In this document: piece by piece, positions 13,001 to 42,799 of the stretch
Layout: the number at the start of each line of letters is the position of its first letter
Position numbering within the stretch: the first letter of the stretch is position 1
Assembly (NCBI GenBank): GCA_000708835.1
Contig: DF237644.1
Span: forward strand, 1 to 42,799
Length of the DNA stretch: 42,799 nucleotides
Source: Klebsormidium nitens
Taxonomy: Eukaryota > Plantae > Klebsormidiophyceae
Direction: 5' to 3'
Notes under the pieces: model-generated
The model's database searches: none
The model's input: only the letters and a program-made list of their open reading frames with translations
Told to the model about the DNA's origin: nothing
Program-made: the position numbers and the translations under genes

Positions 13001-14054
13001 GACCCGCTGTTGGCGCCTCCCCGAGTATTTGAAAGGATGTCCTGAGCACTTTCTGTCGATTTTAGCCGGACTCGCATGGCGTTCAAAGACCTTAGATAGG
13101 AAATCAATGACCCTTCGTCACTCATCATAATGGTACTAATACGTGGCAGACAGAGAGAGCTTTGACAGCCCGCCCTGAAAAAGGTTTGCAACGGCTGTCG
13201 TGGTCAAGCAGCAAGGAACCGGGACTGCAAGTACGTCAAACGTCGAACGCACAATCATTCAGGACTTAAACCACGTCGAACACTTTGTTGGGTGCTCAAT
13301 ACTCAACATTACTGACAGCATTAATTTTTTCGCAGGCTGTCCTCAATTGGCCGACGCGGTGGGGGGTCAAGTGATCGAGTACTTCAAGAGTCAGGGCCTG
13401 AACCCCCGGGACGTGGGAGAAGCCGTCTACAGAATTGCGATCGACCCCGCGCCGCGGCCGCAGTACCTCATCATGCGGGACGATCAGTGGCCCACCATCA
13501 TCCCGCTCCTCTGCAGGTGCGGTCGAGGACATCGAATCAAGTTGTCGAAGTTTGGATCCGGTGCTTGAAGTCAAGCCTTCTTCTCCTTCAGTCGTTTGGA
13601 AGCTCGCCTTGCCTCGGCTTCGTTCTCATTGTTTGAAAAGCATGTTGAACCTAATCATAATGGGATTGACCAAACAAACCTTCGACACCGAGCTCTGCTC
13701 AGGACTGCTTCGCGATCCAACACCCAACTCGTCTTCTCGCAGTAGGCCCCATATCACCTTGCCTTGGAAGGGGAATCAGAGACTGTCATCAAAAGCTTTG
13801 CGCAAAACTTTCCCCGTTGCTTCTTCGTGAATCTTGCCCCAATGCCCCCGGCCTCCTGCAGGCGCGAGACGTTGCCTCTAGACCAGGTTTATGTGCATAC
13901 CCCGGCGGGGCCCAACATCAGCGCATGGCTGTCAAAAGAGGCGGCGGCGCGCTCCCAGTACACTTGCAGCGCAGCGTGTGGGGGCGCGCCGTATTGCGGG
14001 CCGGGGCCGCTCGGGTCGGGGACGCTGGGCACCGGGACCATCGGGCCGTACTAG
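10014..14054 (+). pseudogene. Short-chain dehydrogenase/reductase (classical SDR) with N-terminal signal-peptide-like segment and Cys/Gly-rich C-terminal tail; frameshifted (copy A)
   Basis: Spliced exons give RIALVTGAST|GIGRAATDRLAAAGGIVIGTSR (TGxxxGxG; 10882-10924 joined to about 11386), LDQTSDDSV and IDFLYLNAG, FDTNFWGPVRVLQ (11986-12108), ILLTSSIAS (catalytic Ser), YTVSK (YxxxK, 12573-12587) and GTVNT. Terminal exon ends GPY* at 14054. Single-base frameshifts at about 10115, 11473, 12566 and 12718. Confidence 0.9.
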
Positions 14055-14899
14055 AGTGGTGCGCAAAATCAGCCGAGAATGAGTGTCAATATAAGTTGGC
14101 AATACGCGAAGGAAGCAAGTTGCATGATGGCCAGAAGCTAGTCTCAACGGTGTTACATGGTATGATTAGTGACAGTGGAAGGAGTTTCCTGTGTGCATGG
14201 CACTGTGCTCTGTGACATGCAGGTTATGCATAGTACTGGAACCATTCACATGATGGCGAAGGGATCGACATGTGGGCGGTCGGGGTGTGAACAAATGAAA
14301 ATAGCACCGAGATACACATGCGTGACACTAGGCTGTAGTAACAAGGTAGTAACAGTTTACGAGCAGTTTACTTGAAGCTAGCATACTAGTGGCAGGCGCA
14401 CGGGTACAAATCATATCGAACCGGCCAATCTGAACCCCCGGCGAATCTGAGCGTAAATGCTCATGTCCCCGACTTTCCATCTCATTTGTTTTGGTTTGAT
14501 GGGACTTTTAGTGGCTTGACTCAGAACACTTGCAGGAGGGAAAGTCCTTGATGCTGTTGATGGTTCGAACCACCTCAAACGACGGACATGAAACATCGGT
14601 TGATCGGTGATGTCTTAGGTTCCACTTATTCGACGATTCCATTCCAAGCATCCCAACAATGTTGATGGCACTTTGAATACCGTCTTAATACCACCAGAGT
14701 TCTGACGCCGGATTGAGAACTGTTTGAAGACGAACACCCCTCCGACTCGACTCTCAAGCCTCTCCCCGACTGCTGAAAAGTTCATGCGTCAAACCTGTGA
14801 AACCTTTCCCCTCAGCCTCCGTTACCATGACGTCACAAAAAAATTTATCTAACTGTCGACGACCGTCGATGGTTTGAAATCCGCGTTTCCGGAGCCCCA

Positions 14900-20800: not shown

Positions 20801-22300
20801 TGTGGAGAGACAGTGGCCTTTTCTAAGTGACAGTAGGTAGCTCCAGTATCTGCTCACAAGCTTCGATCAGACGGGAAGGGTTGTCAGACCGCATGATCCT
20901 GCCTGCAGATCACTGCTCGGTTGAGGTCTTTGGAAGCTGTCGTCGCTAACCAGTTTGGGGGGCCAAACGGAACGCATGTGCCAGGCTACCGTTACCTCTA
21001 CGTGGACCGCTCTACTGAGAAGATGCAAGCGTCCCCCGCGGGAAAGGTGAGCCCATACCTGTTTATGATGAGTCATGTTGGCAATGGTATAGCTCTTGAT
21101 CAATGGTCGAGGCAGTGCGATGATCTTAACGGTCTAGTCATGTTTGTGTAATAAATAACGACCCCCACGCGTTTCAGCGGCTGCATGATTCTTAGTGTGC
21201 GGTCTGGAAGTTAGCAAGCGGCGCTTGCTGTGTGTGTACTCGTTCTTGAGGAGATTGCGAGAAAGCGCGCTTCTGTTGCATGTACACGTGAAAAAGCCCC
21301 AAGATTGATGTCCGGTCAATCAATCAAATATCCCGCAGGGTGAGTGATTGCATGAGCGTGTCCTATGCATCGGGATGCTTTCAGAATCAATGCGACGAGA
21401 CTGGTCACCGCGCTACCTGTGACGAGCATCCGTAACTCCTCCAAGTTGATACTTTCCATGATCGAGAATCCATACTTTTTGTCAAAAATTGGAGCGATAG
21501 AACGGGTCGGCTCGAGTGTTTAACAAAGAACACAACGTTTTCCTTCCAGGCTGGGACTCTAGCGAAGGAGTCGCTTGCCGCCTTAAACCAAATCCGAGGA
21601 GAAAAGGATGAGGAGAAAGCCTCGGCGAAATTAAGTCCCAGCATCCCGGAATCGAGCACCGAGGTCTACTTGCGCGCCCAAAACAACGCCTGGGTCGTCG
21701 TGAAAAAGCAAGTAATGTGAAGAACCTTTTTTTTCAGAAATTTTGCTTTCTTTCAGGTCACTGGGCTTTGGATGTAAGGCGAGCGTTGGCGCGCTCATGG
21801 TACCTGACAAGCTCTAGGAAAGATGGGTTTAGTCGCTTTGCTTCATTGTATTCTGCAGCATACCCTCAGCACTCTCGGTTGCTGCCCAGGTCCTAGGAAA
21901 TGCGGTGCATCATCCCTCCTTGACGCACTCATTAACCGTCGGTCTGGCACATCATTTGTCCTGTTTGAGAAAGCTCAACGTTGTTTTCTATATATCTCCG
22001 CAGGACGGATACACACGAGTTGTATGTGGTCTTGGAAAGGGTCAGTGAGACTCTAGTGGCAGCAAGTGAGATGATGGATCGCTTCGATACAGACATTTTG
22101 GGAGGACTGTTTCAAGGAGGCTAATAGGATGGTTCATAAGAATTCGTGTACGCCCCTGCCGGAGACAGAAGACAATCTTTTTGAGCTCGACAATTCAACA
22201 TAGAAAAGATCTCCGTATGTTGTGTCATTTTTACCGCCCATGAAAGCGATGCCTGTTGCCATATTCATTGGACGTCCTTGCACGCTTTCCATGACAAGTT
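14900..22300 (-). pseudogene. Long decayed minus-strand coding region(s), unidentified; possibly transposon-derived (boundaries approximate)
   Basis: Protein-like minus-strand stretches are broken by stops. Examples: DQVDPTSGWIVELNIQLQEDSTFKVKFKSQEEGADPQVRNFAVAKWFSNAYRLSKPDVSKKLEAKGTQ*MKAGELLDAVFQKE* (about 19470-19205), RRYWAVRSKISPESPLKGSCCAHQDHPHAGFTFKEDVPVLF (about 16440-16315), IFDKKYGFSIMESINLEELRMLVT|gtagcg (about 21490-21420). Several GT/AG boundaries are present. Confidence 0.4.
18988..19175. repeat. Two-copy imperfect tandem repeat, period 104 bp
   Basis: ttcgaggtcagtcaaggagtca...gctgacgtact(g/a)ccccattggagcacggatt starts at 18988 and again at 19092. Confidence 0.9.
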
Positions 22301-23409
22301 CACACAACCGTTCCTGGAATTCTGGTAATGTCGAAATATCTGGGTTGAACCTTACTAGTAGCGAGACTTAAGTTTCGGCCGACTGACACTCTTCGGAGCG
22401 CGAAAAGCCTCCAACGCCAAAATCTATTGTCGGCTTGGGCAGCCCGTTATACAGAGGTGCTTCAAGATAATGGAGGCCGCCCGCATAGCCAAAAGGGTGA
22501 CCAGGACGATTGCGCATCTCTTGATGAAAAGTTGCTCGATTTGCCGCCAATGTTATAGAACACCTATATATAATGAATGCTAGCATCATGGCATCTTACA
22601 TGCAGCACTTGGGTCGGAAGATATTGATACCCCCGCATGCAAGCACGTATATGTTGCTCCCTACAATGTTCGAATTCAATGACATTGTTGAGTTGCAGAG
22701 AACAGCGGCTTGCGGGCCAGGCTTTATATAGAGAAAGCGCTTTAAAATGAACCTACTATAACTAAGTACCCGGTTCAATTATACTTATCGGTCTTGGGCT
22801 TACCTATTCATCATGCAGCATGATTGCCTATGATAGGCCGCCAAACCAAAAACAGAACGCGCGGCCTAGCCCCGGCCTAGCTTCCGTTGTATATAGAAGC
22901 CCTGTTGCAACGCGAAGCATCATGGCATGCATTCAACCGCCGCTCGAAACGCGACAGTACCGCGACCGTCGGACGTGACCGTCGCCGTGAGTCGTCCCTT
23001 TTCTTGATTGCTGAAAAGCGCGGGGCTTGGCCGCAAAACGCGGAGTCCCGCGAGTTGTGCATGACCTTATCGCGGCATAACCGTTGGTAAAACGGTCGAC
23101 TGCATGCATGTGTATGAATGCAACCATGCATCGAACATTCCACTGCCGAGGCCAAAAGGGCGGCCAGTGTCCGCGATCGTATCTGCATCCGACCGATGGT
23201 TTGGTCAAGTTGGTTGGCACAGCGTTTTGATTGGAAATTTTTGACAAGATACCTACTACGCCGCTTGTACTCCGTATACGGGTTGCCTACAATCAGAATA
23301 CATGCAATCTAGATGCGGATCTAGACCGAGATCCTGCAGACCAAAACTACACCACTATGTTTTTGTAAGCGAGCTTGATTTCAGACGTCTCCACTTGCCC
23401 GTGTGCCAG

Positions 23410-25459
23410 GGCGGCTGTTCATTGGGGGCATCGAGAGTCCTTCAGGCGGCGCTCCGTTTGATGCCCACCACGGGTGAGCCAGATCTTTTAGAGTTGATGG
23501 CGAACAGGCCGTTCGAGGGGTCCGTTTGGTGAGGACAGCGTTTTGGGATGGCGGTGTTACTGACCATCTCAAAGAGCAGTCGCTCCAATTGCTCGGCAAG
23601 GCCTCATCCAGACGAGTTTTGTGAACACCCTCTTCTACTTACGGCCGACTGTGAGCTGCGTCGGAGATTAGCCGTCGTGCATCACCGTGATACGGATCTC
23701 ATGTCTATTTCAGCCAAGCTTAGTTGCATTAATTAAATTTGAGAAACAGAGTTCGGCTGTAATCGGAAGCATTGATCGCATCGTGACGCAGCCGTGTTAA
23801 TGGAGAGCAAAGAAATCAGCAGATCCTCACCACGTACATCTCAAAGTTGAGCCCCACCTCTGACGTCTCCGACCCACTTTCGCAGGCTACGCGCGCATTC
23901 TCGTGACCAGTTCCATAGCTTCCCTGTACGGCAGCCCCGGTTACCTGCCGTACACGGTTTCAAAGTGAGGCCTCCGCGCTCTCCAGGAGACCTGGGTGTC
24001 CACGGGGGCAGCCCCCGGGAGCACGCCCAGTAACATCGACGTCATCGCCATCATGCCCGGGACAGTCAACACCAGCCTTGGGTACAACGCCATCTACGGT
24101 GAGCGCCCGCGCGCGCGCAATTGCTCCTTCCACAAACACGCGAAAGGTTATGTTTGGTGGGAAAGCTCCGGGTTTGGGTTTGTTTAAAGATCCAAAGTCG
24201 CTATAAAGTTTCCCGCTGTTCGATACTGTGAGCCTTTTTTACTGGGGTTCGCTCACGGTCAGACGGTCGGCAGAGAGTCCGCCTCTCATAACGGCCCGGC
24301 GACCTAGAGAATTTGGGAGGATTACAAGCTGTTCCTTCTGCGCGTCGAACTGTGAATCTCAAGTCGAGAGTTGGATATTGGCCGACCCGCGTTTGGAGCT
24401 CCTCAGAATTTTGAAAGCTAGGGATGTATTCGCACTTACCTGACTGTTTATGCGTGAAGCGCACATGCGCTCAAAGGTTTCGTACGTGACCTTCGTCACG
24501 ATCACAGAGCCCACGTCTTTGCAGCTTCAAAAGTGCGCCCTGGAAGGTGCTCGACATGTCTATCATGTGCATTAACCACTGCAAGCAAGCAGGAGAGGAA
24601 TCCGAACGTCGAGCGCCAATCCTTTTCCGTACTTCAACCACGTCAAGCACCGAGATGTTGTTCGGTACTTAAGACAGAAAGATACTAACAAGGGGATTTT
24701 ACGCAGGCTGTCGTCAGCTAGCCGACGCGGTGGGGGGGGGCAAGTGATTGAGTACTACAAAAGTCAGGGCCTGAACCCCCGAGACGTGGGAGAAGCCGTC
24801 TACGGAATTGCGATCGACCCCGCCTCGCCGCGGCCGCAGTACCTCATCATGGGGGACGATCACTGGCCCACGATCATCCCTCTCCTATGCAGGTGCGGTC
24901 AAATACATGCATCAAAACAGAGTCGGGTGAACCATTATCTAGAGTCCTCAGAGTTCGAGCTTTGTCTGATTCAATGATTCTGTCATTTCTTCCAAAGCTC
25001 TCCTTTACTCAACTTCTTTTCCTTTATGCCTTAGAACGCATCCCGGTTTCTTGAGGCCCCTCAAAAGTGACAGAAGCACTTGCTGAAAACTAGGTTTGAT
25101 CATAGTTTCACTGGTGAAGCACCCAACACGTCTTCTTGCAGCCACTGGCAGTCCCATACCTTCGATTTAAAGGGGGTCTGAGTATCATCGAAAGCTAAGC
25201 GGCAAAAGACTTTATATCCGGATTTTCGCCGTCAATGCCGCCCCGATGCCCAGTCCTGCAGGCGCGAGACGTTGCATCTGGACCAGGTGTATGTGAACAC
25301 CCCGGCGGGTCCCAACATCAGTGCATGGCTTTCGAATGAGGCGGCGACGCGCTCCGATCAGTATACTTGCAGTGCAGCGTGTGGGGGCGCGCCGTTCTGC
25401 GGGCCCGGGCCGCTCGGGTCGGGGCGCTGGGCACCGGGACCATCGACGGGCCGTACTAG
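23410..25459 (+). pseudogene. 5'-truncated genomic duplicate of the SDR gene (copy B)
   Basis: Four exons match the last four exons of copy A, and intron sequence is shared too (e.g. cccgctgttcgatactgtg). The first retained exon is 64 nt versus 123 nt in A. TGG became TGA at 23966-23968 just after YTVSK. The G-run near 24732-24740 is frameshifted. The Rossmann-fold exons are absent upstream. Confidence 0.9.
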
Positions 25460-26999: not shown

Positions 27000-29900
27000 C
27001 TGATTCATTGTAATTCGTCCAAGCCTGCAAGTTTGGCCCAGGACACTACTAACCTTTGGACGTCTACAGAGTATGGTACCAAGGCGTCCGGTCGAGTTTG
27101 CTCGGAGCGTGGTTGCACAATGATGCACGGAGTCCGATCGTCTGTTGCACACTATTCCCCACGGACCGCCGGCGTCACTGTACCATGTCGCCAGTTGCAT
27201 GCGAAAGGTGCGAACGTGCATGCGAACAGCTAGCACGTTTGCAACTAAAGGCATGCCGTGCGGTGCCAGTTTACAAAGGGGGGCCACTAGCTTCAGACGT
27301 TGCACCCCGGCCCTCAAACTCTGGAGACCTACCGTGCACAGACTCTGTTCGCCTGACAGCTCAATGGTCGACCAAACGTAATTACACAGATTCGTAATTG
27401 GGTCACAAGGTTTCTTAGTATGTTTCTGAAAGATCTAGTAACAGACTCCATTCCAAAGACTTTTCGGGTAGATTTGGTTGATTGCTGTTTATTATCGCCA
27501 GAACTCCCAGAGTCACGTACGTGTCAAGGGAGTTTGCAAAGCGACCTCTCTAATGAGATAGAGCAGCACGTCACCTGCAATGGACAGAGTAAACTTTGCA
27601 AGTCTTGATAGACGGGTTCTTTGAACTACTGTACGAACAAGCTACATCTACATGCTCTTGACTGTCTCAAAAGTACCCTCTTCGGCTAAAGTGGGCATAA
27701 AGCACTTACGTCCGTGTCAAAACCTCCTTGCAGCCCGTATCTACAGTCACGTGTCAAAAGCGAACCCACCGACTTTACGCCCTCTGGAAGTAGTAGCCGC
27801 CCGTGCCGTATACTGGACCAGGAGGATCCTTTGCCACTTGCCTTCTTGACTGATAGAGTTCTTGATTGATAGACTTTCAAGCTCCTTGCAACCAAAGGTC
27901 ATGTCGCTCAGCGCAGCTCGTTCTGTGTTCCTGCAAGAAAAGCGTTCTTATCAGGGTTCGACGAGCCCCAGGCACCGGAGATAGGGCCTTACCAAAGGAC
28001 GGTCAAGTGATTCAAGCTCAATCCTCTGAAAAGCGATAACCACAGGAGAAGAGTATTTACGGACACGACCTTTGCAATCAGCCGTTGCAGTGTGGACTTA
28101 CCGGAAGGTGACAGTACTAGCCAAGCAATCTCTCTGTCGCTTGCTCGGGTGATATCTGGCGACGTCTCATGCTTTTAATCAATACATCTTTTGTGCATCT
28201 CTGTTATGAAAGGTGGACGGCATAAAGAGGAAAGAGACAGAGACGGTATGCGGACAGCGACCAGCCATCGAAGGGCGCCACCTGTTGGGACCACGATCCT
28301 TGATTCTGCAGCCGCACAGTGCACACAGCCGAGCACATTTGAGAACATGCCTGCCTTTCTCAGAGACGAAAAGCACAAAGCCCAACAGTCCGGTCGAAGC
28401 TCGCATGCAACGACCGAGCTTAAGAGGTAGAACGAAGATCCAAACGGTCACAACGATCCAAAATCTGCACTCGCCTTGTCCAGTTGACCCCCAGCCACCA
28501 TCCTCAGGACTTTCCGGGCGCTGCATTGCCCCCATCCGACGCATCTGAACGGCCTTTGCTGACGTCACCACCCCGGGCGGCAGCCTCCGGCTCCTGACCG
28601 GGACTCTCGGGAGGCGTTGCTTCCCCGAGCGAAGGCCCAGTGCTCGACGCTCCGGCCTCAAAAGCAGCGGCCCCGTTTGTTTGGGCCCCCTGCCTCGTTC
28701 CACCACCGTGCGCCGGCTCGAGCGCTGGAGAAGCGTGTCCAACCGCGCAGCAACCACCCGGCCACTCTCCTCGGTTACGCGGATCAGCCCCCTCAGAGCG
28801 CCGACGATCTCAGCCCAGGGCTCCGGGATCGCTGCCCGGCGCTCCTGCAGGACCCCGACAAAGGCAGAGGACGCACCGCCGCCGCGCTCTTCGGACGGTC
28901 CTCTGCTCTCCGGCTCTGAAAGCTTGTCCGCATAAGCCTTCCAGAGGGAGCCGTAGCTTGCGGCCGACGGCAGCTGCTCTGCGGGCGAGCCGGTTGCAGG
29001 GCGCGCGTCTGCCTGACACGTAGCGACCGCCGGTGCCTTTCCCTTTGCATCGGCGACCACGGTCTGCACTTCGTTTCCTGTTGCCTGCTGCGAAGGCCCA
29101 GCCTGGTCGCTCCGAATGGCCGGTCTCGGTGCTTCTTCTCCGCTGCTTTCCCGGGAGTCGTGTCCTTGCGCGCCGCTCCCTCCACCGTCGTCCTCTTGCT
29201 CCCCTCCGTTATTGCCCTTCTTCTCCGGCGCATTTCCCCCCTTTGTGCCGTCAGCACGTCCCCCCGTTGTGACGTCAGCATCCCCGCTCTCCAGACCTTT
29301 TACCCTCTGCACCACATCAGTCCGCTCCTTTGACCTCAGGTCCGGCTGTGCGGTTGGTGAATTCATCCCCTTTCCATCCGCGGCAGGGACCCGCTCCTCC
29401 GAATGGTCAGCGCCAGAACGACCAGTGACGTCAGCAGCCCCAGGAACGACATCCGGGCCCCCAGAAATGAGGCTAGCATTTCCATTTTCCAGGTGCGGGA
29501 CCGCTGGCTGGGGCATCAAGCTGTGCTTCGGCAGCTTCTCGGCGGGGGATCCCCCGAGTGAGGCGCTCGCCTCGATCACACGCTCCCTCTCCCGCAGTTC
29601 CAGCTCGATTGCAGCCAGGAGATCTTTCTTCGTTGGGGCGTCAGCGCTCCGGTCCGATTCCACGTCATCATCTCCTTCATTCGACACGTCAGCTCTCCCC
29701 CCCTCCACGACGTCGGCATCCAATCCCGCGTTGACATCAGAACCCCTGCCGGCGTCCACGTCAGCGCCCTTCCCCACTGCCTTGACGGCGCCGCCCCTCA
29801 GTGCCGCGCTGGCGCTCTCTTCCTCAGTACGAGCACTCTCCACTTCCGCTGCTTTCACCGAGACACCACCTGCCGGGTCGCCCTTCCCTGCTACCTCTGT

Positions 29901-32536
29901 TGACTTGGCCGCCAGTCTCAGTGCCTTCTTCCGGGCGACCAGGTTTCCGTCACCCTCTCTGATGGCTCCGCCTGCTTCTTCCGCGCTAGGCTGTCCAGAA
30001 GGCTTCTCCGTGCCGCTCCGCTTCTTCTCACACGCCAACGGGTTGGGATCCCCGGGCTGATTCTCTGCCAACGCTTTGCTGCCGGGTTGAGCCGATCGGG
30101 GGTCTTCTTCGGGCGCTGCTGCTTCAGCGCGTGGGGTTGACCTCGTGCCCGCAGTGGAAGGTCGGTCGGTAGCTTTTATTGGCGGAGAAAGGGCAGGCGA
30201 ACGAGGCACTGACTCCTGCAGAAGAAACGGAAAGAAAGCCGTCAGCAGTGGTTCATTGTGCATTCACTGAAACGGAAAGGACTTTACGAGCGCTTTTGCC
30301 CAATCAGTACCGACGAATCCCTCATTGGATTGCCGTATGCAAATCTGGTTCCCTCGGAGATTGAGCGAATAAAGAGTAGGACCGGCTAACCTTCCTCGAC
30401 ATAGATGAAAGGAATGCCTGACAGGGTGAAACGAAGATGCGGAGATACCATTCGAGGGCACATCTAAATCACCGTATGAAAGTATAACTGCTTAAAACGC
30501 TACTTTAAGAGTAGACTACCTTGAAAATGTTACAATGTAGAGTAATAGAACTGTAAGTTGCAACCAGTCATAATTGAATCGCTATAGTTCTATCGGAGCC
30601 GCAATGCTTGGACTGGGTGAAATTCAAGTCTCCAAAGAGAATCTCCCGTCTTTTTAGTGTGCTAGGCAGGACGAAGCAGTTTGTTGAGCAGGAAGGCTGT
30701 AATGCCCACATCTTGACGGTTGCAGATCCCAGGCGCACAAAGAGATTCTTTGCAGAACAGAAGAGATGCCTGCCTGGTGAATCAAACGGGTCTGGTCGAT
30801 GGCAACGAGCATTCCTGCTCGTAAAACAAAAACCCTTTCTGTTGCGTGCAAAACCAAAAGAACTTACAAAAGGGTACTCAGCGCACAAGTGCAAGAACTG
30901 TAACGGCCAGGTTTCCAACTTTTCAAACTGTGATGAAAGATTTCACAAAGCCTACGGAGAGATGTAAAAGACGCTACTGCTAACTTCCTTCACGTTTCAG
31001 CCTGATTAAAAATGGCGGGGCACGTGTGACCAATGAAAAGCTGGGTATGAGAAGCAAGCCGCCACGAGATAGGACGCGCTCCCTTCAGTTCTGACCCCCC
31101 CCTCAAAGACCAGCAAAGGGAAGCAATTTCCAAGATACATGTTTTATGAAATTGGGGTTCGAAACACTAATACAAACTTTTAACTGATGAGGGAAATGCG
31201 ACCAGGTTCGGTTACCAAGCCTTTGCGGCAGCTCTCCTTGCGAGGACCCCCTGCGATCCCTTTCACCGCGCCCCCCTTGTCAGCGTCGGCCAGGAGCCCA
31301 TCTTTTTCCATCCCTGCATCGCCTGCCCCATTTTTTGCGCCTTCTCGCCCTCCGCCCCGGCCCGCCTTTGCCACACGTTGTTTCCTAGCTTGGCCCTCCG
31401 CGACTTTCAATACTTCGCCAACGAAGTTTTGCAGGCCCCGCACTGCAGGAGGATCCCCGGGCTCAGTCCCTGGCACGGGCCGACTCCCCACCTCTCCATC
31501 GCTGCCATTCTTCGAACTCATTTGCCCACAAGCCGTGCCTGCCACTTCTTCCCCCTCCCTAGGTTCGGCAGCGTCCATTGTTCCCGGCTTCTCCCCCCGC
31601 TCAATGCCCTTCCCTGATCGAACCTTGTTTCCGGCCTTTAGGACCTTGACTTCTGCATCCGCCTTTGCACCCACGTCAGTGGCGTCTTGAGCCCCTTCGG
31701 CCGTCTCTGCTCCCGCACCGTCTCGTGCCTTTTCCATCCTCCCTCTCTTGGCTCCGCCCCTCCTCACCACCTCTTCCTCCTCAGCAGCGCCTTCCATCTT
31801 TTCATTCATCCTCCTCTCTTTTCACCCCGTCCGTTATTCCGACCTTCCTTCCCTTCTTCGTAACGCCTCCAGGCTGTACTTCCGCGCCCCCGAGAGCAGC
31901 GCCCGCTGTCTTCCCCTCCACAGCGGTGAGACCGTCTTTCCGTTGCTGCTTGCGACTCTTCGTGAGCACTCCGGACCCGCCTTCCTCATCGCCAGGCACA
32001 GTCTTCTTCTCCCCGCCGCTCCCTATGAGCGCTCTCTTCTTCGAACCGTCATCTTTGCCGTAGCACTCGCTACACTTGCGCACGCCAGCTGAGGCGCCAT
32101 ACCACCGCCTCAACTGAGTCACCCCGCACGACGCGCACTGCTTCCTGTTGCTGCCACGTGGCCCCTCAGCCACTCCTCCCTTCTGCCGTTCGTCGAGCTC
32201 CGCTTCTTCACTCCGGAGATCTTCAATTTGCACATCCTCCCTGCGCGCCCTCTTCGGTTCTACGTTTCCCTTCCGCAGTCCATCCGACTGCGGGCCGTTC
32301 ACGTCAGAGGGCTTGGTCTGGGCCTTGAGTGCATCGTCCACCGCATTGGGCGAAGGGGGGACGACTCCAGCCGTTGCAGTTGGTGTGTCTGTTGCGACTC
32401 CAACCTTCTCTTCGACCACTTCTGAGCTATGCCCACGCCCCACATCCTGAGAAAGGGGTCCGTCAGTGCCTTTCCGAATGAAAGGCGCAGTGGATTCTAC
32501 CGAGGGCGGGATAGTAGGTGCGATGTGGCCGCCCGC
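27000..32536 (-). pseudogene. Downstream exons of a very large gene: GATA-like C4 zinc finger, long Ala/Gly/Glu/Lys-rich low-complexity exons and an unidentified C-terminal region; decayed
   Basis: Exon begins at acceptor ctacag| (32536). CASC-x17-CSEC with the conserved Trp (CASCGVTQLRRWYGASAGVRKCSEC) lies at 32137-32063. A frameshift near 31815 joins ORFs 31802-32548 and 31180-31809. A 1741-nt exon spans 30215-28475 and ends at an apparent GC donor. Further short exons (about 30420-30300, 28155-28102, 27930-27700) contain in-frame stops. The 3' boundary is approximate. Confidence 0.65.
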
Positions 32537-33247
32537 CTGTAGTTTCAAAAGGAAACGGGTGTGGCCGAATGGCCTGCTTGTTCAGGATTGTATATTGAGC
32601 TGAGATAGCAATCCCAAGACAAACGTGCTCAGCTAGAAGTCAGAAGCCTGTCCGCGCAAGGTAAGGTTGAGAAAACTCAAAAACGCAGGTGATACAGAGA
32701 TGAGAACACAATCAGACGCTTTCAGATGAACTCAGACGTTCTGATCGGAGGGCCAAGGAAGAGTCAGAACCATTTGAACACAGCCAGAGTACAAGGGAAC
32801 AATGGTGGAGATGTCTGAATAAGTGCGAGAAAGCTTTGCGAAATTGCAGTTCTGGTCTTGAGATGAACAACCTCACGGTCTAGCTAGTTTCCACTCGACT
32901 CTTGAATTCGAACATGCACGATTTTAAAAAATATTCTTCAACTTCTGACGAGATGCGGCGGAGTAAGGAGAAAAAAAGGCGGAAAGTGTGCGTGTCTTCT
33001 AAAAGCATTCCTTTGCCGCAGAAAGCCCCCGCCTTTCGCAACAGCATGGAAGCAACTCATCCTGGTAAGAAGAAAACCCTCCACAGACGGAAAAAGAGCT
33101 GCAAAGCAAACGATTGTGATCAGTCTAATAAAGCTCAAGACCACTTCTAGCTACAGATTTCGGGGAGTAAGCAGCCATTCATATTTATTCGGCGACATTC
33201 AGATAAGCAAATCGGTGCTCTATCACCAGTTACACTGGTAAACTCAC

Positions 33248-34864
33248 CTTCTTTAGAAGGTTGTTGTCCTCCTCCACCATTTCCTGCTCATTGTCGTCCA
33301 TGTCCAATTCCTCTGCGAAGAACCAGACGTTCTAGGCTGAGTACTCTTGCTGACGAACGTTTCAACCAACGCGGAATGACTCTCGAGGAGCCGAAGCCAG
33401 TGATCAAGCCGACAGTTGAGGAGGATGGCGGAAGTGCCACGTCAGCAGTCCATGGTAAGACACCTCGTAACACAGAAGCGAACATCATCAATAGTTTTAG
33501 TGCTGCTCGTTGTCTCTACACTTACCGAAGTCCAGGAAGATGGGTGGAGGAAACACAGTCTGCCAACGATTCATTAGGCCATCGTTCGGGATCTTCTCTA
33601 GCTCTCTCTTCAAGGGCTCTGGCTGAGTATAACCAAGGATGTTGAGGTGCGTGTAGTCGCACGTCTTGGAGTGATTGTCGTTGACCAGTTCTCGAGACCA
33701 CTTGGCTCCACCCTTGAGTTGCAAAGCTCTGACACGATCTGAGTTGCCCTTCTTATAGTGTCCATCATCTCGAAGAACACGTGAGCCTCCTCCAGGAAAA
33801 GCATTCCGCTGTGGTCTGGCTGGAAGTGGAGCAATTGAAATAGACGCTCGAAGTTGACCTGTGGAAATAATAGGATACAGACAGTCAGACATAGTGGTAT
33901 GAAAAGTCGGTGGCTCTCTACATGTATACTATATCTTGTGCATCCGAATGGATCATGTCAATCTAAGAAGGTTACTTCAATTGCCTGATCTCTGCAGAGC
34001 CCCCATCCACAGTCACCAATCTGAATAAAGATCCCAGGTTGAATGTCGCGTATGATCATGCTCGGCCATGCAGCCGCTTGCAAAATGAATTAGCCAAAAG
34101 CTGGCACTGCGCGGCTTGCACTCGAGTCAGATGCAATCATATGCTGATCAATTCAGAAGACACAGCCGATCGGTCCAAACTTGAACCAAAAGCAGCGAAC
34201 AGCATACACGAATGCATAGAATGGCAGAATCTAAAACAAGTAAACTTACACATGCTATGCATGCAAGACTTATTACTATGCATGTGCAGAAGGATGAGCC
34301 TCTGCTTAGCAGCGACAAATGCAACGATGCAAATTGTCTTACAATGAAGCCAGGCATACCATCCTAATAAGCAATTCCAGGCTAACGGAAAAATTGCTCA
34401 GACAGTGAAATAAATGGGAACGGATCCAACGATGGACTCACGGCACCGTCGAGCTTGATCTTCGCGAATTGAACTTTATCGAGCAGCTCTTCTAGGTCGG
34501 GGGAACCTTCGGGGTACAGTTGGGGATTCTTTCCATTCAGAACCGCATCTTTCTTGGCTTCATTGATGTCGCCTTCCACCGAGTCAATGATGTCGCTCAG
34601 CTTATTGTGCGCCTGGGATTTTCCATGGCCACTGTCACCAACGACGAAGCCCCAATGGATCAACTTCTGCAGCCAGTCCAATCCTTCAACTTTGACACGA
34701 GAACCTGGACCAAGGAAGTAGGATGCCGCAGAAATCACAGGAATCAGTAGCATCCAGGACGAAACTCCAATTCTCTGTCCCATCCGCGCGAGCATCTCCA
34801 GCACCACAGGTGGAAACGCAGACTTGGCGTTATCCTCGTTGACGAAAAGACAGATTGCACGCAT
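33248..34864 (-). pseudogene. DUF3987/YfjI-like P-loop ATPase (putative primase-associated helicase), spliced; one frameshift
   Basis: Exon 34864-34442: AFPPVVLEML...WGFVVGDSGHGKSQA (Walker A). Exon 33858-33526: VNFERLFQLL...GMLFLEEA (Walker B-like), then after a -1 frameshift at about 33762 HYKKGNSDRVRALQLKGG, LNILGYTQP and DGLMNRW. These match the G-x-x-QP and DG-L-x-x-R motifs I recall for DUF3987. Acidic exon at 33312-33248. True start may lie further upstream. Confidence 0.75.
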
Positions 34865-35650
34865 CCGTGTTGAGCTGGGGAGCGGCCAGAGGACGAGCCC
34901 CCTTTTTTCTGGTTTGAGACCGTGAAGCTTCGATAGTTGAGCTGGCGTGCAAAGGACTTTGATCTATTATCAGGCAGCTTCGACCTAGAAAGACCTCAAA
35001 GGTCTCCACCACAAAGGACCTCAGAAAACTGTCCTTCGGAAATTAAACTGGATCAACTCAATTGTATTGAATTCGGAAGCGGATCAACTTCAGCACATTC
35101 TGTCCCTGTCAAGCTCAATCCAGGCTGCCGTGGGACTGCAAGAACGGAAGCACACTCAAAGCTACTGAATGCAGTACCGCCACATTCAAACATCTTTCAA
35201 ATTTGAATTCTGTGGTCAATTTTCGTCCTTCCCAAAAGGACGCTCTACGACCACGCATTTCCCAAACCTCTAAGACCGCAAACCCGCTCTCTGCAGGGCC
35301 CGCGCGCGCGGCCGCGGGCGCGCAGCGACCACTCCGCCAAACAAGCTCTACGATCGACCATCCAGACGCGACCGCGCTTGTGCTTGCGCACGCGCCTGAG
35401 TTGACGACACTAAGCTTAGGCGACCAGCGCTTAGTCTTCAAAATCAGCTTGGTTGCAGCAGACAAGGGGTCTAGCGCCGTAGGCTAAGTGTATCTAGTAC
35501 TAGGGCTGCCGTATACATTCAAACGGCTTCGAGCAAGAAAGCTATTCGCGTTCTGCATCAGTTTCTTACTCACAGTATGCCGCTTTTCCCAACGCCTTGA
35601 GACCGGAATGGAAAGACAAGAAGGCCCAGCAGAGCAATCGACTGCGCAGG

Positions 35651-38529
35651 ATGGCTCATAACAGAAGACGACCAGAGAAGGAGATTGCGGATGAGACGAA
35701 TGAATGCATCAGAGAGAAGATGCAAAGGTTACGCGATCGCTTCATCTTCGACTGCCCGGGCTTCGTTTAAGCTAGTCAGACGAACGTGTACAGGACTTTC
35801 AGTTCTATAAGCGACCTGTACACGTTCGCGGATCACTACATTTACAGGGACCCGCTCCTTCTCTTTGCGTCTCCTGAACCAGAACGGGGATGCTACAGAT
35901 ACTTTGCTGCCACATTTCTCCCTTTCCGACTCAGGTAAGCCTTCGACATCCGTAGAACTGCACCTTCTCCAGTTTGAAACCTAAGCCCTGCAATCATAGC
36001 GATGCTCTCAAAAAACGCACACAACCACGCATGATTAGCCTGCCTTTTGGATATATGAAAACAGGAGTCTGGCTTCTCGAGACTGTCCGGATCAACGGTT
36101 TTGGTGATGTGCAGTTACGGGGCGCTTCCGGACTGCCAAAGAATGATGTTTGAGATTTTCAAAACGGTAGGTCAACAGTCTCGCTGCTCCACACTCTGGC
36201 AAGTCTTCAAAATGAATTAAGCTACAGAGATTCCGTACAGTCAACTGCTTAAGGGAGTCCACCTAATATCAGTGCCACATAATGAAAACAAAGCCCCTGA
36301 TTCGCCATATGCAGGGACGTTGGCACATCTCTTTCTGGATCTAGAGTTTTACACGCAGTTCAACCAGGGGAGAGACCCCAATCGCATGCTAGACACGGTC
36401 CTGGCAGTCATCGAAGAGATTTGCGAACAAAAGTTCGGTATGGGCATTGACTTTGACAAAGTACTGGAGATGGACGCCTCTTATTCAGGTAAGTACCATC
36501 AAGCAAACCATGCGGCCGCCTTCTTTCTGGCTGTATTCTCACGTTCTTCAAACCGCGCTTTCGATTTGAATCTACCAGATGTAAATAACAGTTAGCAAAC
36601 TGTAACGCCATGAATACAATTGCATCCCCTGATTCCGAACCGTACGTTTGCAGCTAAAGTCTCCCGCCATGTGATCGTACCGATCTTCCACCGGTGCTTC
36701 AAAAACGTCCACGAACAGATGCGGTACTTCATGGAGGAGGTAAGTGAAAGACGATGATGAAAAACCATTCACCGATACATCTTTGTGTGGAGCTTGGTGC
36801 ACAATGCCTCCAGAAGCACGTCTGTGAACGCATATCAAAAGCTTTAAGAGTTCGAGTTGGTCCTGGATGCCGAACTTATACTCTCTTGCTCTCTTACCTT
36901 CAGGTCTGCAACCTGATCCGCAACCGCGCCTCTGACGGGGACAGACTTTGCAAAGAGCTGCTGGTCAACCAAGCTCCTGGCCTCCCCCAAACTCTATTCA
37001 TCGACTTAGGCGTTTACACGAAGAGCAGACACCTACGATGCCTCCTGTCGAGAAAACTAGAAGGACCATCTGTTCCCTTTGTGCCGACCTGCAGGTACTT
37101 CAAGGACGAGGTGAGGCTCTCGCTGATTTTATCCACCCAGCCAATCCCATGCGAGGCAAGGATTGCCTACAGACACAAAAAGGTCGTATGCACGAATCAG
37201 CCCGGCTGAGTCACATTCCTGTTCTCCTTGTCTAAAAGTGTTGCCTTTTGCAGGACCTCACGCTACAGCTGATTCACTCCTTGGGTTCCAACGTGTCCAT
37301 CACCAGCTCACCTCTGCCGGACGTCAGGCGCATGCAAGTGAGGTTCAACTCCTAAAATCACAGACGTCCCCAATGCTTCTTGATAAGAAACATTCGTGCA
37401 CAAAGTTGCGTACTGTTGACCGTCACGGTTATATAAGGAGAATACAGATTCAAGCCAGCATCCCACAATATTCGACACGCAGGTTCGACAACCAACCGGA
37501 AGCCCCTAGTTCCAGTCGATCCGCAGCCCCACATTCAACACGCCATCAGAACCCCTGACCGCTACACCGTCAAAGCAGTCACAGCAGTTCCAGTGCAATA
37601 TTCCGTCTTTGTCAACATACATTGAAGAGCTTGTGCAGAAAAACACCGGGTTTCATGTAAGCGAACACGTTCCTGCCCAACTCCATCGTCTCTTGAGCAG
37701 CGCAACAGATTTCTAAGCTGCGTTCTGGCCTTCATTACGGTGTCCCGGTTTAAAAGCTTATGATTCTTTTCAGCTCTATCCATTCATTTTGATTACGTTA
37801 CAGTACGGGCAATTTCCAAACTTTTTCCTTTCGCTGCAGTCGCCAGCGTACAGTCGTCGGTACTGTTCGCTGGTGAAAACGGGAACTACATCTCTTTTCG
37901 GTTCAGAGGAACCAACTTCTGCTTTAACGTCATGAGGGAGCACAGCCAGAACCGGGGTGAGTGCGGATCACACCAAAAGCTTCAGAACTTTCTTTGAAGC
38001 AATCGTTCAACGGCGTCGAAAACTTGGCTGTATTCTGAAGCCTTCCCATTGTTGGAAACATAATCCGCTCAAGCAGTCCTGATCCAAGCCCCGATCAAAG
38101 ACACTAGTCCGTGTAAGCAGCTAACATTCTCGCTCTTCCGCTTGTTCAGTGTACGTGGTGGTGGACCTCAATCGAGGCACTTACTATCAAAAGTGCCACG
38201 ACCAAGCCTGTCAAGGTAAACCACTGACTCCAAAGCACAACAACTTGCAACCACTGGTAACGTCGTGTTGCATCTCGCGTCCACAACAGGCAACACATGA
38301 ACCAAGTTTCTGCTCGGAGTCGGAAGCCATCGCCACCCATAATTACAGCTGATAGTCTGAGGCAGTTCTTTTCTTTACAGGCTACCGATCGCCTGCCAAC
38401 AGCTTACCGGAGCATCTCGTCAGCGAAGCAGTGCATGTCGTGCGCTCCCTCTTGGAGGTACCTTCTGCAGCACGCACGGGCTACGTTCCAGAGCCTCATG
38501 CACAGGTCAGAATGCTCAAGAGTGACTGA
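35651..38529 (+). CDS. PRIMPOL: PrimPol (AEP-superfamily primase-polymerase with UL52-like zinc finger), 11 exons, about 420 aa; may carry 2 single-base deletions and 1 stop
   Basis: Manual splice: 35651-35727, 35848-35934, 36115-36166, 36315-36488, 36654-36739, 36904-37110, 37254-37337, about 37483-37656, 37840-37956, 38150-38215, 38381-38529. Motif I HLFLDLEF (DxE), motif II KVSRHVI (SxH), motif III FIDLGVYTKSRHLR, zinc ligands FCFNVMREH and YQKCHDQAC, then GYRSP as in plant PrimPols. The best splice sites give phase mismatches at 36166 and 37656 and a TAG at 37507-37509; weaker alternative sites avoid these. Confidence 0.9.
35781..35828. repeat. 14-bp perfect inverted repeat (20-nt loop) inside predicted PrimPol intron 1
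   Basis: CGAACGTGTACAGG (35781-35794) and CCTGTACACGTTCG (35815-35828). Confidence 0.95.
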
Positions 38530-39053
38530 TGTTCAGAGTGATGTTGTTTTCGTTTAAATATTTCTCTTTTTTTCTTTTTTCGGCATTTCGTGCATTGATC
38601 GAAGGGTTGCGTGGCGGTCATCGCAACCGTCGATTGACCCTAAGGAGGACCCGCCAATTGTTCGAAGTAGAGGTAATCCTGCCAATGTCATGCCGGCTGA
38701 TCAACGGCAAACATGTCAAATCGCCCCGCGATCAACGGCAGGGACCGACTTCAGCGGCCCACAAATCCTCGACCGGGCAGAAGCCTTGGTTTATAAACAG
38801 TCGTAACTCCTCGAGATACCAGACGGTCGCTAGGCGAGCCACTGGGCATAATGGGGCCCAAAGTGACGCCGGCAAAAATGCCAGCTCTCAATTTGGTCGT
38901 CTCGCTCGCTCAAAGGGTGTCTTGAAAGAGATGCCGCCATGGCGCACCGTTTTGCAAGTACGAGCCTGACTATCGACGGTTGAACGGCGACCACGTAGCT
39001 GCCTAGCGGCCCACGAAGAATTCGAAAAGTGATATCCGGGTTCATAAGGCGGA

Positions 39054-40708
39054 ATGTCGTCAGATCTCCTCGAACGGGTCCTACAGTGCAAAGTCTGGGC
39101 CGCGCCTCCGACTTGTGTGCTGGCAAAGCATTTGCCAGTCATACATGTACTGAAGGTGTAAGGCTCAACGAGGTTAGGGGAAATTGCTGTAACCCGTTTT
39201 GTTTTTCCTTCCTTTTCCACAGAAACTTATTCATTGAATCTAATAAATCAAGAGCAAAACGGTACGCCGAGGCTAGCCAATGCGCACTATTGAGCGATTG
39301 AAAGCGGACGTGCTATGGCATTCTTGCCACCACTGCCGCCAACTATCTCGCTCAGCAGATCACCCGGCGGCCGTCTGGAAATCTGTGAAATTATTTCCCT
39401 TATTAAGCTTCCTTTCCAGTGATGAGCAGATTGTGGGTCAGAGAACTTGTCTCTGCCGCCGATGTCAGAGCCATCTGCAGTCTTCGTCGTACGATCAAGC
39501 GACCGCCGACCCGGAAGAAGTTGTGACAGCTGAGCATCATTCAAATTTATTGTGCGCAGGAAGCTTCGCCGCCGGACATCGAAGGTGCTTCACCCGAGCT
39601 CGAAGCGAGCGTGACACTCGCCGGCCTCGCACAGGTAAGTTAATCCATACAATGGACGGATCTGGTCAAACTGTACCGGATTGGAAGGCCTTCCGCCGTT
39701 CGATGACAGGCACGCAACTTCCCTATTGACCCACAAACTTCTGGGTCATCGTAATCCCGGAATGTATACGCATTTTGAGCCGGTTACAGTGAACGGGTAC
39801 TACACTGCAGAGCCTGCGCCGAGTTTGTGCGTGAGCTGACGAAGTATTCGTCAGTGACGCACTTGCAGGCGAAGGCGCAGCATCTCTGAAGCCCCTGTGT
39901 AGCCCGTTTTGCATCCGTTGCTTTCAACGTGACTGTTGCATCCAACGGTGCCAAACGAGTTGCATTACTGACGACACTTATTATTCCGCACCTATCAAGA
40001 CATGGGTACGACCTGTATACGGACCAGGAGATCGAGGCTTGCGCCGCTCTAGCTTCGCTGATCAAGGTCGGTCATCCAACCTTTCATACGAAGTTCGTAG
40101 CTCTTTCCGCCTCTCTTCGTACCCTCAGTCAATGAAGCAACTCCATTTGCATAGCAAAACAAATTTGATTCTCTAACCTACGTAATGTTATGTATCATTG
40201 AGCATATGCCAGGTTTATTTTCTTGCAGAGACCTGCGCACGCCGACAATCAGCACCGCAGCAGTTTCGACGATTCAGCCCCCGCGAGCGCCCTTCCTGGA
40301 AGCGACCACTCGCCAGACAGCCCACAGACTCCACGGACAGGGCTCCAACCTTCTCCAGAGGTGCCGTCTTGTCACGAAGACTCAGACCCTGCGGCCACTG
40401 AGCTGCTTCCGGCGTGGGCGGATACAACGCCTCTGCCTTCATCTGATGACGAAGATGACGTCAGCAAACCGAGCGGGAACGGAGGAGTCGGGACCACGGA
40501 GATCCTGGAGGACGGTCAAGCGGACCCTGATCCAGAGTGCGGCAGCCAGATGGGGAGTTATGCAGAGACAAGGATGCAGACTGTGGGCGGTGCGCATGGC
40601 CGAACCCCACAGCTACTAGATCGAGAAAGTCAATCCGACGAGCAGATCGTTAGAGCAATCGAAGCAGAATCGGGCGTGATCGAAGCACGCGATCTTCTAG
40701 GGATTTAG
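39054..40708 (+). pseudogene. Multi-exon orphan gene with acidic Ser/Pro-rich last exon; partly decayed
   Basis: Candidate exons: MSSDLLERVLQCKVWAAPPTCVLAKHLPVIHVLK (39054), gcgcag|EASPPDIEGASPELEASVTLAGLAQ|gtaag (about 39560-39634), VAFNVTVASNGAKRVALLTTLIIPHLSRHGYDLYTDQEIEACAALASLIK|gtcggt (to about 40066), and a final exon RPAHADNQ...SSDDEDD...ARDLLGI* (about 40229-40708). In-frame TGA codons occur in upstream exons. Start uncertain. Confidence 0.45.
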
Positions 40709-40786
40709 GAATAATCACTTGGACCACTTGCAGTTCCCCGCATCCTTACGCTGCTTGAACTTTGCTTGCAAGTTTACTTCACTCAC

Positions 40787-42799
40787 GCTTCGAACATCGC
40801 TTCGTCCACATTCCTCCCGTTCATGCTAGACCACCAAATCTTGACCCAGTGGTGCTCGTGCTCTCCCCTCTCCGTGGATGTCCAGCGAGTGGCCCCTAGG
40901 CGCCGAACGGTGGCAGTGAACTTGGAGAGGTCGTGATACTTGCGGAAATTCCACGCCGAATTTTGCAGGCCGGCGATCGCGGTGCACTTGTCGTCAAAAT
41001 GGCGGAGCAGACGATCGGACTCCTTCAGGGTATCCTCGTTGTGGATGCCCTTTTCGAGCCAAAAGGTCGCCTTGAACCCAGTCCACCAAAGCCACCGCCC
41101 ATTCCACGAGGAGGTCTACCCCGTTTGAACGGAACAGACCTGACACCAGGATCGGGAGCACCTGAAGATGCAACATAGGGAGGGTATGAGTTGGAGGACA
41201 GATTAACTATGATTTGAAAGGTGGTGAAGGTCGCTTACAGCCTATTAATAATGGCCGTCCGATCACACGACAATTGTCTATTCCAAGCTTCACACCACTC
41301 AGCCCAATGGTCTGAATCGATTACCTGCATGACGGCCTTCCACTCATAGTTGGGCACGGAGTAGCGCTCTGTGAAAAACTCCTTGCTCGCTGGCAGCCGC
41401 AAACCGGGGTTGTAGTAGAGGTAGATTTGGTGGAGGCGTATGTTCATTAGTGAGAGGAAGGTTGCCTTGCCATCTGGGTGAATCTCGGCGACCGCGTCCA
41501 GAATGTTGAGGAAGTGGGACCCCAACACCCCGCCGTACACTGTGTGCAGATCGTCGGGGACCATCTTGGGGTAAGGGGCGTTCCAGGGCCGGGTGCCGTA
41601 CTTCCAGCCGAAGAACCATGGCTGCAAAAGGCCGACCGCAAGAGTTGATTGCGGGAAACGGTTCGTCGATGCTGCCGACTCATGATCAGTACTTCAGTAC
41701 GCCATGTGGAACTTTTTCCGCTAGCTTTTGCGAAACCTCAACACGAAGGCGCACACCTTCTGATACCGAGACTCTGAAGCACTTTGACAGGATCTTGGGC
41801 GCTGGCAAAGAATTTTGAAAGTCTGTGCGCGCCTCTCCGATCAAGGGTTCTATAACGTAACTCTTCGATTGGATTCTGGGCGTCAGTCTCTCAGCAAATG
41901 GCGTGTTCCCTCTCACCATCTGGGGGTGCACCCCGTGCTTCTTCATCTCCTCCGTAACCCGGACCATGGGCACCCGTGGGTCTTCTTTGAGGTCGAGGAT
42001 GGTGTTAACAGCCACACGCATCTTCTTTTCCTCTCGCGGAGGGTAATCGCCATCGACGGCCTCGTAGAGTCGGTTCAACTCCTTTGGCGGGACGAGGCAG
42101 GAGTCGCAGTGGTTACTTTTGACGTTTGAGATGGTGGAGGCCTCTCCGAGGTCTTTGCTGATGCAGAACAGCTGCGGAACGCCCTTCCGGTGGACGCCAT
42201 GCGGGTCCACGAAGTCGATCCCTGACCACGACGCCTTCCGCGCGCTCGCCGTGATGATCGGCAACGAACTGGTGATGAAGTGGTGCTTCACGTCGCGGTG
42301 CGCGTCCGACTTGGGCTTGTAGCCAGGCTGCGGCCAGTCGGGATCGGGCTTGGGCTGTGGGAGCAAGGCGACGAGCTCCAAACCACCTCTCTCGTTGTAG
42401 AAGCCCCAGCTGAAGTTGGCAAGGGACACGTACATAGGGAACACGGACACGCGGCGGAGGCCGTCCATGGTAGTTTTGTCCAGGTATATGATGATGGGTA
42501 GCACCACATGCTCGCCTTGGAATTTGGGATCTTGGTCAATCTGCAGGCAGTCACGCGTCAGAAAGTTGAAGAAGAAAGGCTCACTTTCAAGGCCCACTTG
42601 CAAGCTCGAGCAAGCAGGTATTGGTTGCCGCCAACATTGATCACATGATGCTGACCAAACCGGAGGAAGCAAGCACGATTGCTGCAAGGTCCCTGGGTTT
42701 GTTGGGGCCCACCTTCTCCTGCATCTTGTTCCACCATGTGCCCGTAGACGGGTGGTCATATTCCCGGATCCCCGTGTCCACCTCCTTCATTGTACCGTC
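40787..42799 (-). mobile_element. Plavaka-family (CMC/CACTA-related) DDE transposase gene, spliced, 5' end outside the window; one +1 frameshift
   Basis: Exons 42799-42713 (REYDHPSTGTWWNKMQ), 42540-41917 (LPIIIYLDKT; FPMYVSLAN; LVALLP; SKDLGEA; HCDSCLVP), 41621-41325 (MVPDDLHTVYGG) and 41161-40787 (NFRKYHDL; RRLGATRWTSTERGEHEH). These match the ordered Plavaka motifs I recall (TGxWW..Q, ii.y.DkT, PvY.t.gN, aD.pE, C..C.vp, pD.LH, KxH, G....sT...E..H). No in-frame stops; one extra G at about 41077. Confidence 0.85.

Follow-up and report, generated by a model that had tools for sequence, protein, structure and literature searches.

The window analyzed here is the entire scaffold DF237644.1 (42,799 bp) of the charophyte green alga Klebsormidium nitens. 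Between positions 33248 and 38529 it contains a gene for a PrimPol-type primase-polymerase and, diverging from it, the remnant of a gene for a DUF3987-type P-loop ATPase. We consider it likely that this region is a decayed fragment of a previously undescribed family of Klebsormidium DNA transposons, 13 to 17 kb in length, bounded by terminal inverted repeats (TIRs) and carrying three intron-containing genes in a fixed arrangement. The window DNA is eukaryotic and intron-rich, and the searches were therefore run one exon at a time, by open frames. Related loci of K. nitens are referred to as L001 (DF237137.1), L002 (DF237628.1), L007 (DF238065.1), L008 (DF238230.1), L009 (DF237680.1) and L010 (DF237131.1), and two metagenome contigs as L003 and L012. 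The features of the window locus are as follows:

35651..38529, forward strand: spliced PrimPol gene, with an archaeo-eukaryotic primase (AEP) domain and a UL52-type zinc finger (matches to human PrimPol and PF03121; tblastn matches to L001, L002 and L007)
33248..34864, reverse strand: broken remnant of a spliced gene for a DUF3987 P-loop ATPase, related to superfamily 6 (SF6) and MCM helicases (PF13148; tblastn with paralogues)
34865..35650, no strand: divergent intergenic region, 786 bp between the two ATG codons (read directly)
35296..35330, no strand: GC-rich island of 94% G+C within the intergenic region, one of only two such sites in the window

The PrimPol and DUF3987 genes of the window

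The initial annotation had described a spliced, eukaryote-type PrimPol on the forward strand from 35651, and this was borne out by the matches to human PrimPol, to PF03121 and to paralogous loci. Seven to eight coding blocks are supported by homology, where the initial annotation had counted 11 exons, and blocks within 35651-38529 matched the PrimPol genes at L001, L002 and L007 in tblastn searches. Catalytic motifs I and III and the cysteines and histidines of the zinc finger could all be read. When the motif-I exon of five copies was made into a profile, human PrimPol was the sole match among 177,635 sequences of the Protein Data Bank (PDB) (E 1.2e-8, residues 108-162), and it was again the sole PDB match with a profile of the motif-III exon from several copies (E 0.015, residues 266-297). 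The single exons of the window aligned in the same way with human PrimPol (5l2x/7jk1), the motif-I exon with residues 108-162 and the motif-III exon with residues 275-298, and AEP motifs I and III of the element PrimPol are colinear with those of the solved human enzyme. The short PrimPol exons gave no meaningful match in the PDB. In addition, the exon at 38125-38349 matched the UL52-type zinc-finger family PF03121 with an E value of 7e-4 and 19.8 bits, slightly under the cut-off of 21 bits. Among the other copies, the annotated L007 product has a recorded match to this family and L002 a weak one.

No break with homology on either side was found in the window PrimPol. In-frame stop counts within tblastn matches are unreliable, and the stricter count that was used for this gene gave zero. 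One in-frame stop lies within a weakly aligned 5' stretch and is ambiguous; an intron was not assumed at this position because the relatives share none there. The database gene model at 36386-40708 (forward strand) begins within PrimPol and extends 2 kb past the PrimPol stop codon at 38527-38529. It misrepresents the gene, since 5' exons that are conserved in the relatives are skipped.

The DUF3987-type P-loop ATPase, placed by the initial annotation on the reverse strand from about 34864, was likewise recognized by Pfam. Exon 1 (open frame 34385-34963, ATG at 34864) matched PF13148 with an E value of 2.2e-6 and 27.6 bits against a cut-off of 27 bits, and the full-length paralogues P0002, P0016 and P0006 matched the same family firmly (54-72 bits, E 1e-14 to 5e-20). 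The paralogues also matched PHROG family 2373, 'DNA helicase'. The glycine and lysine of the Walker A motif are invariant in the alignment of the DUF3987 ATPases (alignment A2; G98 and K99 of P0002) and are readable in the window exon. The homology stops at about 33500, and in our own reading a short acidic exon extends from there to 33248, in agreement with the boundary first assigned to the gene. The window copy thus spans only residues 15-280 of the 562-aa paralogue P0002; for the C-terminal half, no match was found in the window with P0002, P0016 or P0006 in tblastn searches, even at E <= 1. Furthermore, the remaining part contains one change of reading frame, at a place where all four of the relatives compared stay in one frame. 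DUF3987 helicases have been described with a C-terminal winged-helix domain (PMC4889955). A structure prediction from A2 reached a mean predicted local distance difference test score (pLDDT) of 39, which is too poor for a fold comparison or for recognition of such a winged helix.

Searched with the ATPase exon, a set of 1.84 billion representative proteins gave only 15 matches, of which the significant ones were K. nitens paralogues, three metagenome fragments and, weakly, a protein of Chara braunii (P0015), whose similarity is confined to the N-terminal part. No similarity was found to the ATPase in 50,697 phage records (tblastn), its profile gave a chance match only in the PDB (E 0.98), and it matched none of the PADLOC defence models. 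Exon 1 of the window is 99% identical to GAQ90872.1 (KFL_006950070), an annotated protein of 460 aa. Because its model splices the ATPase remnant to exons from 27513-32581, this protein is likely to be chimaeric, a dead transposon gene joined to unrelated DNA. The region 27513-32581 (reverse strand) is GC-rich (60-64%) and strongly skewed, and contains a low-complexity open frame of 694 codons without a family match.

The two genes had been said to diverge from a region of roughly 790 bp with a GC island at 35296-35330, and both the spacing (786 bp) and the island (94% G+C) agree with the direct reading. The region presumably serves as a bidirectional promoter. The equivalent region measures 416-1748 bp in the other copies, and G+C peaks of 86-89% occur in it at L001 (~9450), L007 (~4643) and L009 (~18943). 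These peaks have little common sequence beyond a short GCGGCCGC-like core, and the distant copies L002, L010 and L012 are without an intergenic G+C peak.

Recurrence, ends and third gene of the family

The initial annotation had named three findings that would speak against a mobile element, namely a single occurrence of the pair, a PrimPol that is the syntenic single-copy host orthologue, and DUF3987 homologues elsewhere without linkage to PrimPol. What we found was the opposite in each respect. PrimPol lies head-to-head with a DUF3987 gene, in the same orientation and between different flanks, at L001, L002, L007, L009 and L010 and also on the metagenome contig L012, and at L008 only the first PrimPol exon precedes the scaffold end, again beside a DUF3987 gene. 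PrimPol homology thus stands beside a DUF3987 gene at a minimum of six K. nitens loci beyond the window, and because the same arrangement recurs at many loci, the pairing is far beyond chance. The genes flanking the copies vary from locus to locus (for example, those for a CDGSH iron-sulfur protein, porphobilinogen deaminase and SNF2), and the DNA similarity between the loci is limited to exons. With several loci and unlike flanks, the PrimPol does not behave as a single-copy syntenic orthologue of the host. Wherever the DNA extends past the ATPase gene, it carries a third conserved gene, encoded on the opposite strand. The ATPase and the third gene are present at L011 and on the metagenome contig L003, a third-gene protein (P0019) marks one further locus, and L005 contains DUF3987 alone, in a copy cut off by the contig end.

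The best-preserved copies are units of 13-17 kb between inverted arrays of tandem subrepeats. At L001, the three genes are flanked by arrays of tandem subrepeats (60-130 nt) in mutually inverted orientation, and just beyond the arrays lies a 33-nt terminal inverted pair (3694-3726 and 20376-20408, 85% identity), giving a unit of ~16.7 kb. L007 is a 13.5-kb scaffold, both ends of which lie within the same kind of inverted arrays. L002, which belongs to a distant lineage, has arrays of very different sequence in the same inverted layout, with ~13.7 kb between their outer edges. The end at L009 matches that at L001, and the similarity between the two loci stops exactly there. In the left flank of L001, a frame for a retroviral-type aspartyl protease is broken at profile position 61 of 136, precisely at the element start, indicating that this copy sits within another mobile element. 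The right flank contains a different transposon-like open frame, and the protease is not continued there. The window itself contains no inverted repeats of 35 nt or longer and no repeat arrays, and the terminal repeats of L001 and L007 were not found in it. Internal repeats of another kind were observed at L007 (~137-nt tandem repeats at 369-907, at the 3' end of the PrimPol model) and at L001 (30-40-nt repeats at 14881-15280, within an intron region of the third gene).

These data can be compared with what would be expected of a host gene pair with a bidirectional promoter, spread by segmental duplication, in which case the window would hold either a duplicate in the course of decay or a PrimPol domesticated as a host gene. 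The spliceosomal introns at conserved positions, the cellular eukaryotic type of the PrimPol and the window PrimPol without an unambiguous break are all compatible with such an origin. However, the flanks are unrelated and the similarity stops at defined inverted-repeat termini, one copy lies within a retroelement protease gene and another has received a nested piggyBac-type insertion, and the decay differs from copy to copy. Moreover, the ATPase was found among the representative proteins only in K. nitens, in a few metagenome contigs and weakly in Chara. A duplicated host pair is contradicted by these ends, flanks and nested insertions, and we regard it as very unlikely.

The third gene converges on the ATPase gene and encodes proteins of 500-800 aa with a chromodomain (P0018-P0023; Pfam Chromo, E 1e-10 to 1e-15). 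Three of the six members also weakly matched PF18718, CxC5, which Pfam describes as a cysteine cluster associated with KDZ (Kyakuja-Dileera-Zisupton) transposases; the best match had an E value of 0.0034 and 18 bits against a cut-off of 26.9 bits, and covered profile positions 7-117 of 117. Three acidic positions, two aspartates followed by a glutamate, do not vary in the alignment of the third-gene proteins (alignment A1), and an H(4)H motif lies between the last two, as read by eye. Such an arrangement of acidic residues with H(4)H has been described for CMC-type DDE transposases (PMC12730594). Judged from these sequence features, the third protein is probably the transposase of the element, and we hold this assignment with moderate confidence.

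Other transposon genes lie close to members of the family. The window contains a Plavaka-type (EnSpm-like) transposase gene at 40783-42724 (reverse strand; PF18759, E 3e-18), convergent with PrimPol. It was considered as the missing transposase of the window copy and rejected (BLASTP against the third gene, E 0.39); since it is unrelated to the third gene, it is part of a separate transposon. At L001, an open frame at 21233-22756 (reverse strand), just beyond the element end, contains a CxC4 cluster 'associated with KDZ transposases' (E 1.5e-4), and the database fuses this frame and the third gene of the element into one model of 1527 aa. K. nitens therefore holds other KDZ-like elements adjoining the PrimPol family, as this CxC4 frame borders the end of L001.

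Age, decay and possible mechanism

The protein identity between copies ranges from ~34% to 90%, yet in most copies the exon junctions of the ATPase gene occupy equivalent positions in the protein. Since junctions are common to copies of such divergence, the family has long been resident in the nucleus as DNA with introns. Each damaged copy is damaged in its own way. In the window copy, the ATPase changes frame once and stops short of its C-terminal half, and neither the third gene nor either end is present. With the putative transposase gene, the two ends and half of the ATPase missing, this copy is not a working element. The ATPase of L008 lacks one internal exon, and that of L011 its first exon, with no PrimPol detected at this locus. 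At L009, the PrimPol gene is interrupted by ~4.4 kb of foreign nested DNA (20388-24793), over which the database model fuses a piggyBac-type DDE_Tnp_1_7 domain with a mannosyltransferase domain. Stop codons occur within parts of both PrimPol and the ATPase at L012.

The conserved introns also bear on a viral origin, in which each copy would be what is left of an endogenised DNA virus of the giant-virus, polinton-like or herpes-like kind, with a primase and helicase module. Large eukaryotic DNA viruses typically encode an AEP primase with a UL52-type zinc finger along with a linked helicase, and the PF03121 match of the element PrimPol fits this pattern. Nevertheless, the intron positions are conserved across divergent copies, and the units are bounded by repeats and have only three conserved genes, with no capsid or packaging gene recorded or conserved between copies. 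With A1 and A2 as queries, neither IMG/VR nor the JGI metagenome contigs yielded a relative; these scans use few peptide patterns, and the absence is weak evidence. An absence of DUF3987 helicases from eukaryotic viruses has also been reported (PMC4889955). Endogenised viruses, an origin to which we give little credence, are contradicted by the ends and flanks of the copies, by their nested insertions, and by the fact that neither capsid genes nor relatives on virus contigs were found.

The genes recur in a fixed order, with defined ends, between unrelated flanks and in one case inside another mobile element, their intron positions are common to the copies, and the decay is specific to each copy. 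In a complete member, PrimPol and the DUF3987 ATPase diverge from a common intergenic region, the chromodomain gene converges on the ATPase gene, and inverted subrepeat arrays stand at both ends. The third protein would be a transposase of the DDE type, binding the terminal arrays and carrying out the cutting and joining of the element, and the chromodomain could guide insertion to chromatin with methylated histones. The helicase and PrimPol would then unwind, prime and copy the element DNA, either replicating the excised element or filling the gaps left by transposition. The terminal arrays would be the transposase binding sites and possibly origins. Alternatively, by analogy with the bacterial enzyme IEE (PMC9943667), the pair may process or fill the breaks that result from excision and insertion. 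If the pair does copy the element, it would be a self-synthesizing transposon in which a primase-polymerase replaces the family-B polymerase.

The initial annotation had suggested that the pair may be the replication machinery of an undescribed mobile element. The mobile element is supported by the recurrence, the ends, the flanks and the insertion into other mobile DNA. The description of the locus has to be changed, as the family has three genes rather than two and the window copy is a truncated relic, and the replicative role of primase and helicase on element DNA is one that we infer by analogy.

Several observations weigh against the interpretation as a self-replicating transposon family. 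Searched against Pfam at E values up to 10, the third protein matched only Chromo and CxC5, and no transposase catalytic family, KDZ included. Its structure prediction from A1 had a mean pLDDT of 36, too poor for a fold comparison. With no catalytic family match and a poor prediction, the label 'transposase' comes from weak matches and a motif reading. No target-site duplication was recognisable at L001, the only copy in which both ends are present and one that is embedded in nested mobile DNA, and no paralogous empty site was found among the fetched loci. The copies are of considerable age, with exon DNA identity mostly at 65-90%, and decay has affected several of them. In the ATPase, the last position of Walker A is non-canonical in P0002. 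Finally, PrimPol and the ATPase are linked to the element DNA by analogy.

This last point is also what would be expected if the family is a transposon in which PrimPol and the DUF3987 ATPase are passengers without a role in movement; the pair might instead serve in damage tolerance or in countering host silencing. Cellular PrimPol is a repriming enzyme in damage tolerance. KDZ-type and other DNA transposons carry conserved passengers in a fixed order, such as the TET/JBP dioxygenase genes of the fungal ones (PMC12730594). On the other hand, both genes are kept in the same order and orientation in every lineage, across 34% to 90% protein identity and on the metagenome contig as well, and an AEP primase with DUF3987 is a replication-initiation module in many prokaryotic elements (PMC4889955, PMC5862659). 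We consider a passenger role rather unlikely. That the family is a third kind of eukaryotic self-synthesizing transposon, moved by a chromodomain-guided DDE-type transposase and copied as a unit by its own primase-polymerase and SF6 helicase, is a possibility that we put forward tentatively, as somewhat short of probable.

Elsewhere in the window, a dispersed direct duplication of ~2 kb was observed (12068-14021 and 23433-25424), in which ten collinear blocks are 82-94% identical and lie ~11.38 kb from their counterparts; its second member overlaps an annotated gene for 119 aa at 23461-25459. A 104-nt unit forms a tandem pair at 18976-19175 (85% matches). An Rfam search of the window gave no match.

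Relation to known elements and implications

We searched the literature in full text and found no paper on eukaryotic DUF3987, none on Klebsormidium PrimPol and none describing a primase-polymerase within a eukaryotic transposon. The DUF3987 proteins of phages and prokaryotic mobile elements are predicted replicative helicases (SF6, MCM-related). An AEP or DnaG primase is either fused to them or encoded next to them, as the initial annotation had stated for AEP primases, and eukaryotic viruses have been reported to lack them (PMC4889955, PMC5862659). The AEP primase and DUF3987 modules of phages, plasmids and integrated elements described in the same papers have the same two families adjoining as the Klebsormidium locus. 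However, the Klebsormidium genes are nuclear, contain spliceosomal introns and diverge, whereas the prokaryotic ones are fused or in tandem, and the Klebsormidium primase, which has a UL52-like zinc finger, belongs with eukaryotic PrimPol and not with a prokaryotic PrimPol family. Cellular eukaryotic PrimPol, represented by human PRIMPOL (5l2x/7jk1), resembles the element enzyme in being the sole PDB match of its primase exons, in the colinear motifs I and III and in the UL52-type zinc finger. The cellular protein is encoded by a single-copy host gene of damage tolerance, as opposed to the element PrimPol, which is multi-copy, carried by an element and always beside a DUF3987 gene.

Among transposons, the KDZ elements (PMC12730594) are likewise large eukaryotic DNA transposons with conserved extra genes in a fixed order, and the weak CxC5 match and the TIRs, as in Zisupton, add to the likeness. 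The Klebsormidium family differs from them in that no KDZ transposase domain was matched, no 7-8-bp duplication was seen, and a chromodomain is inserted in the protein; its extra genes encode a primase-polymerase and a helicase instead of a TET/JBP dioxygenase. Polintons/Mavericks and casposons (PMC4046053, PMC4779613) are also large, TIR-bounded elements with a DNA-synthesis enzyme beside an integrating enzyme, a likeness that is functional only. Their DNA polymerase is of family B and is accompanied by an rve integrase or Cas1, in contrast to the PrimPol, SF6-type helicase and chromodomain-bearing putative transposase of the Klebsormidium family, for whose three conserved genes no family-B polymerase, rve integrase, Cas1 or capsid domain is on record. 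IEE of E. coli O157 (PMC9943667) is an enzyme of primase-polymerase type with a functional link to the excision of transposons and the joining of ends. It is a single bacterial protein encoded outside the insertion sequences on which it acts, and its likeness to the element PrimPol is functional. On these comparisons, we rate the family as large TIR DNA transposons with accessory or replication genes, and the window copy as a relic.

For the annotation of K. nitens, the results mean that several models named 'hypothetical protein' or 'chromo domain' are transposon genes, some of them fused to unrelated neighbouring exons. DUF3987, hitherto a family of bacterial, archaeal and phage elements, is placed in a eukaryotic nucleus with introns. 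To our knowledge, only a few large DNA transposons, namely Polintons and casposons, supply replication enzymes of their own, and these are central to ideas on gene exchange among viruses, transposons and cellular systems. The Klebsormidium family would add a different solution, an archaeo-eukaryotic primase-polymerase with a phage-type helicase, in a streptophyte alga near the land-plant lineage. If it is indeed a third kind of self-synthesizing transposon, it would contain the first DUF3987 helicases known in eukaryotes, and it could be a vehicle that moves PrimPol-type primases between mobile elements, viruses and cellular genomes. For the origin of eukaryotic PrimPol, the family supplies concrete sequences with which such ideas may be tested.

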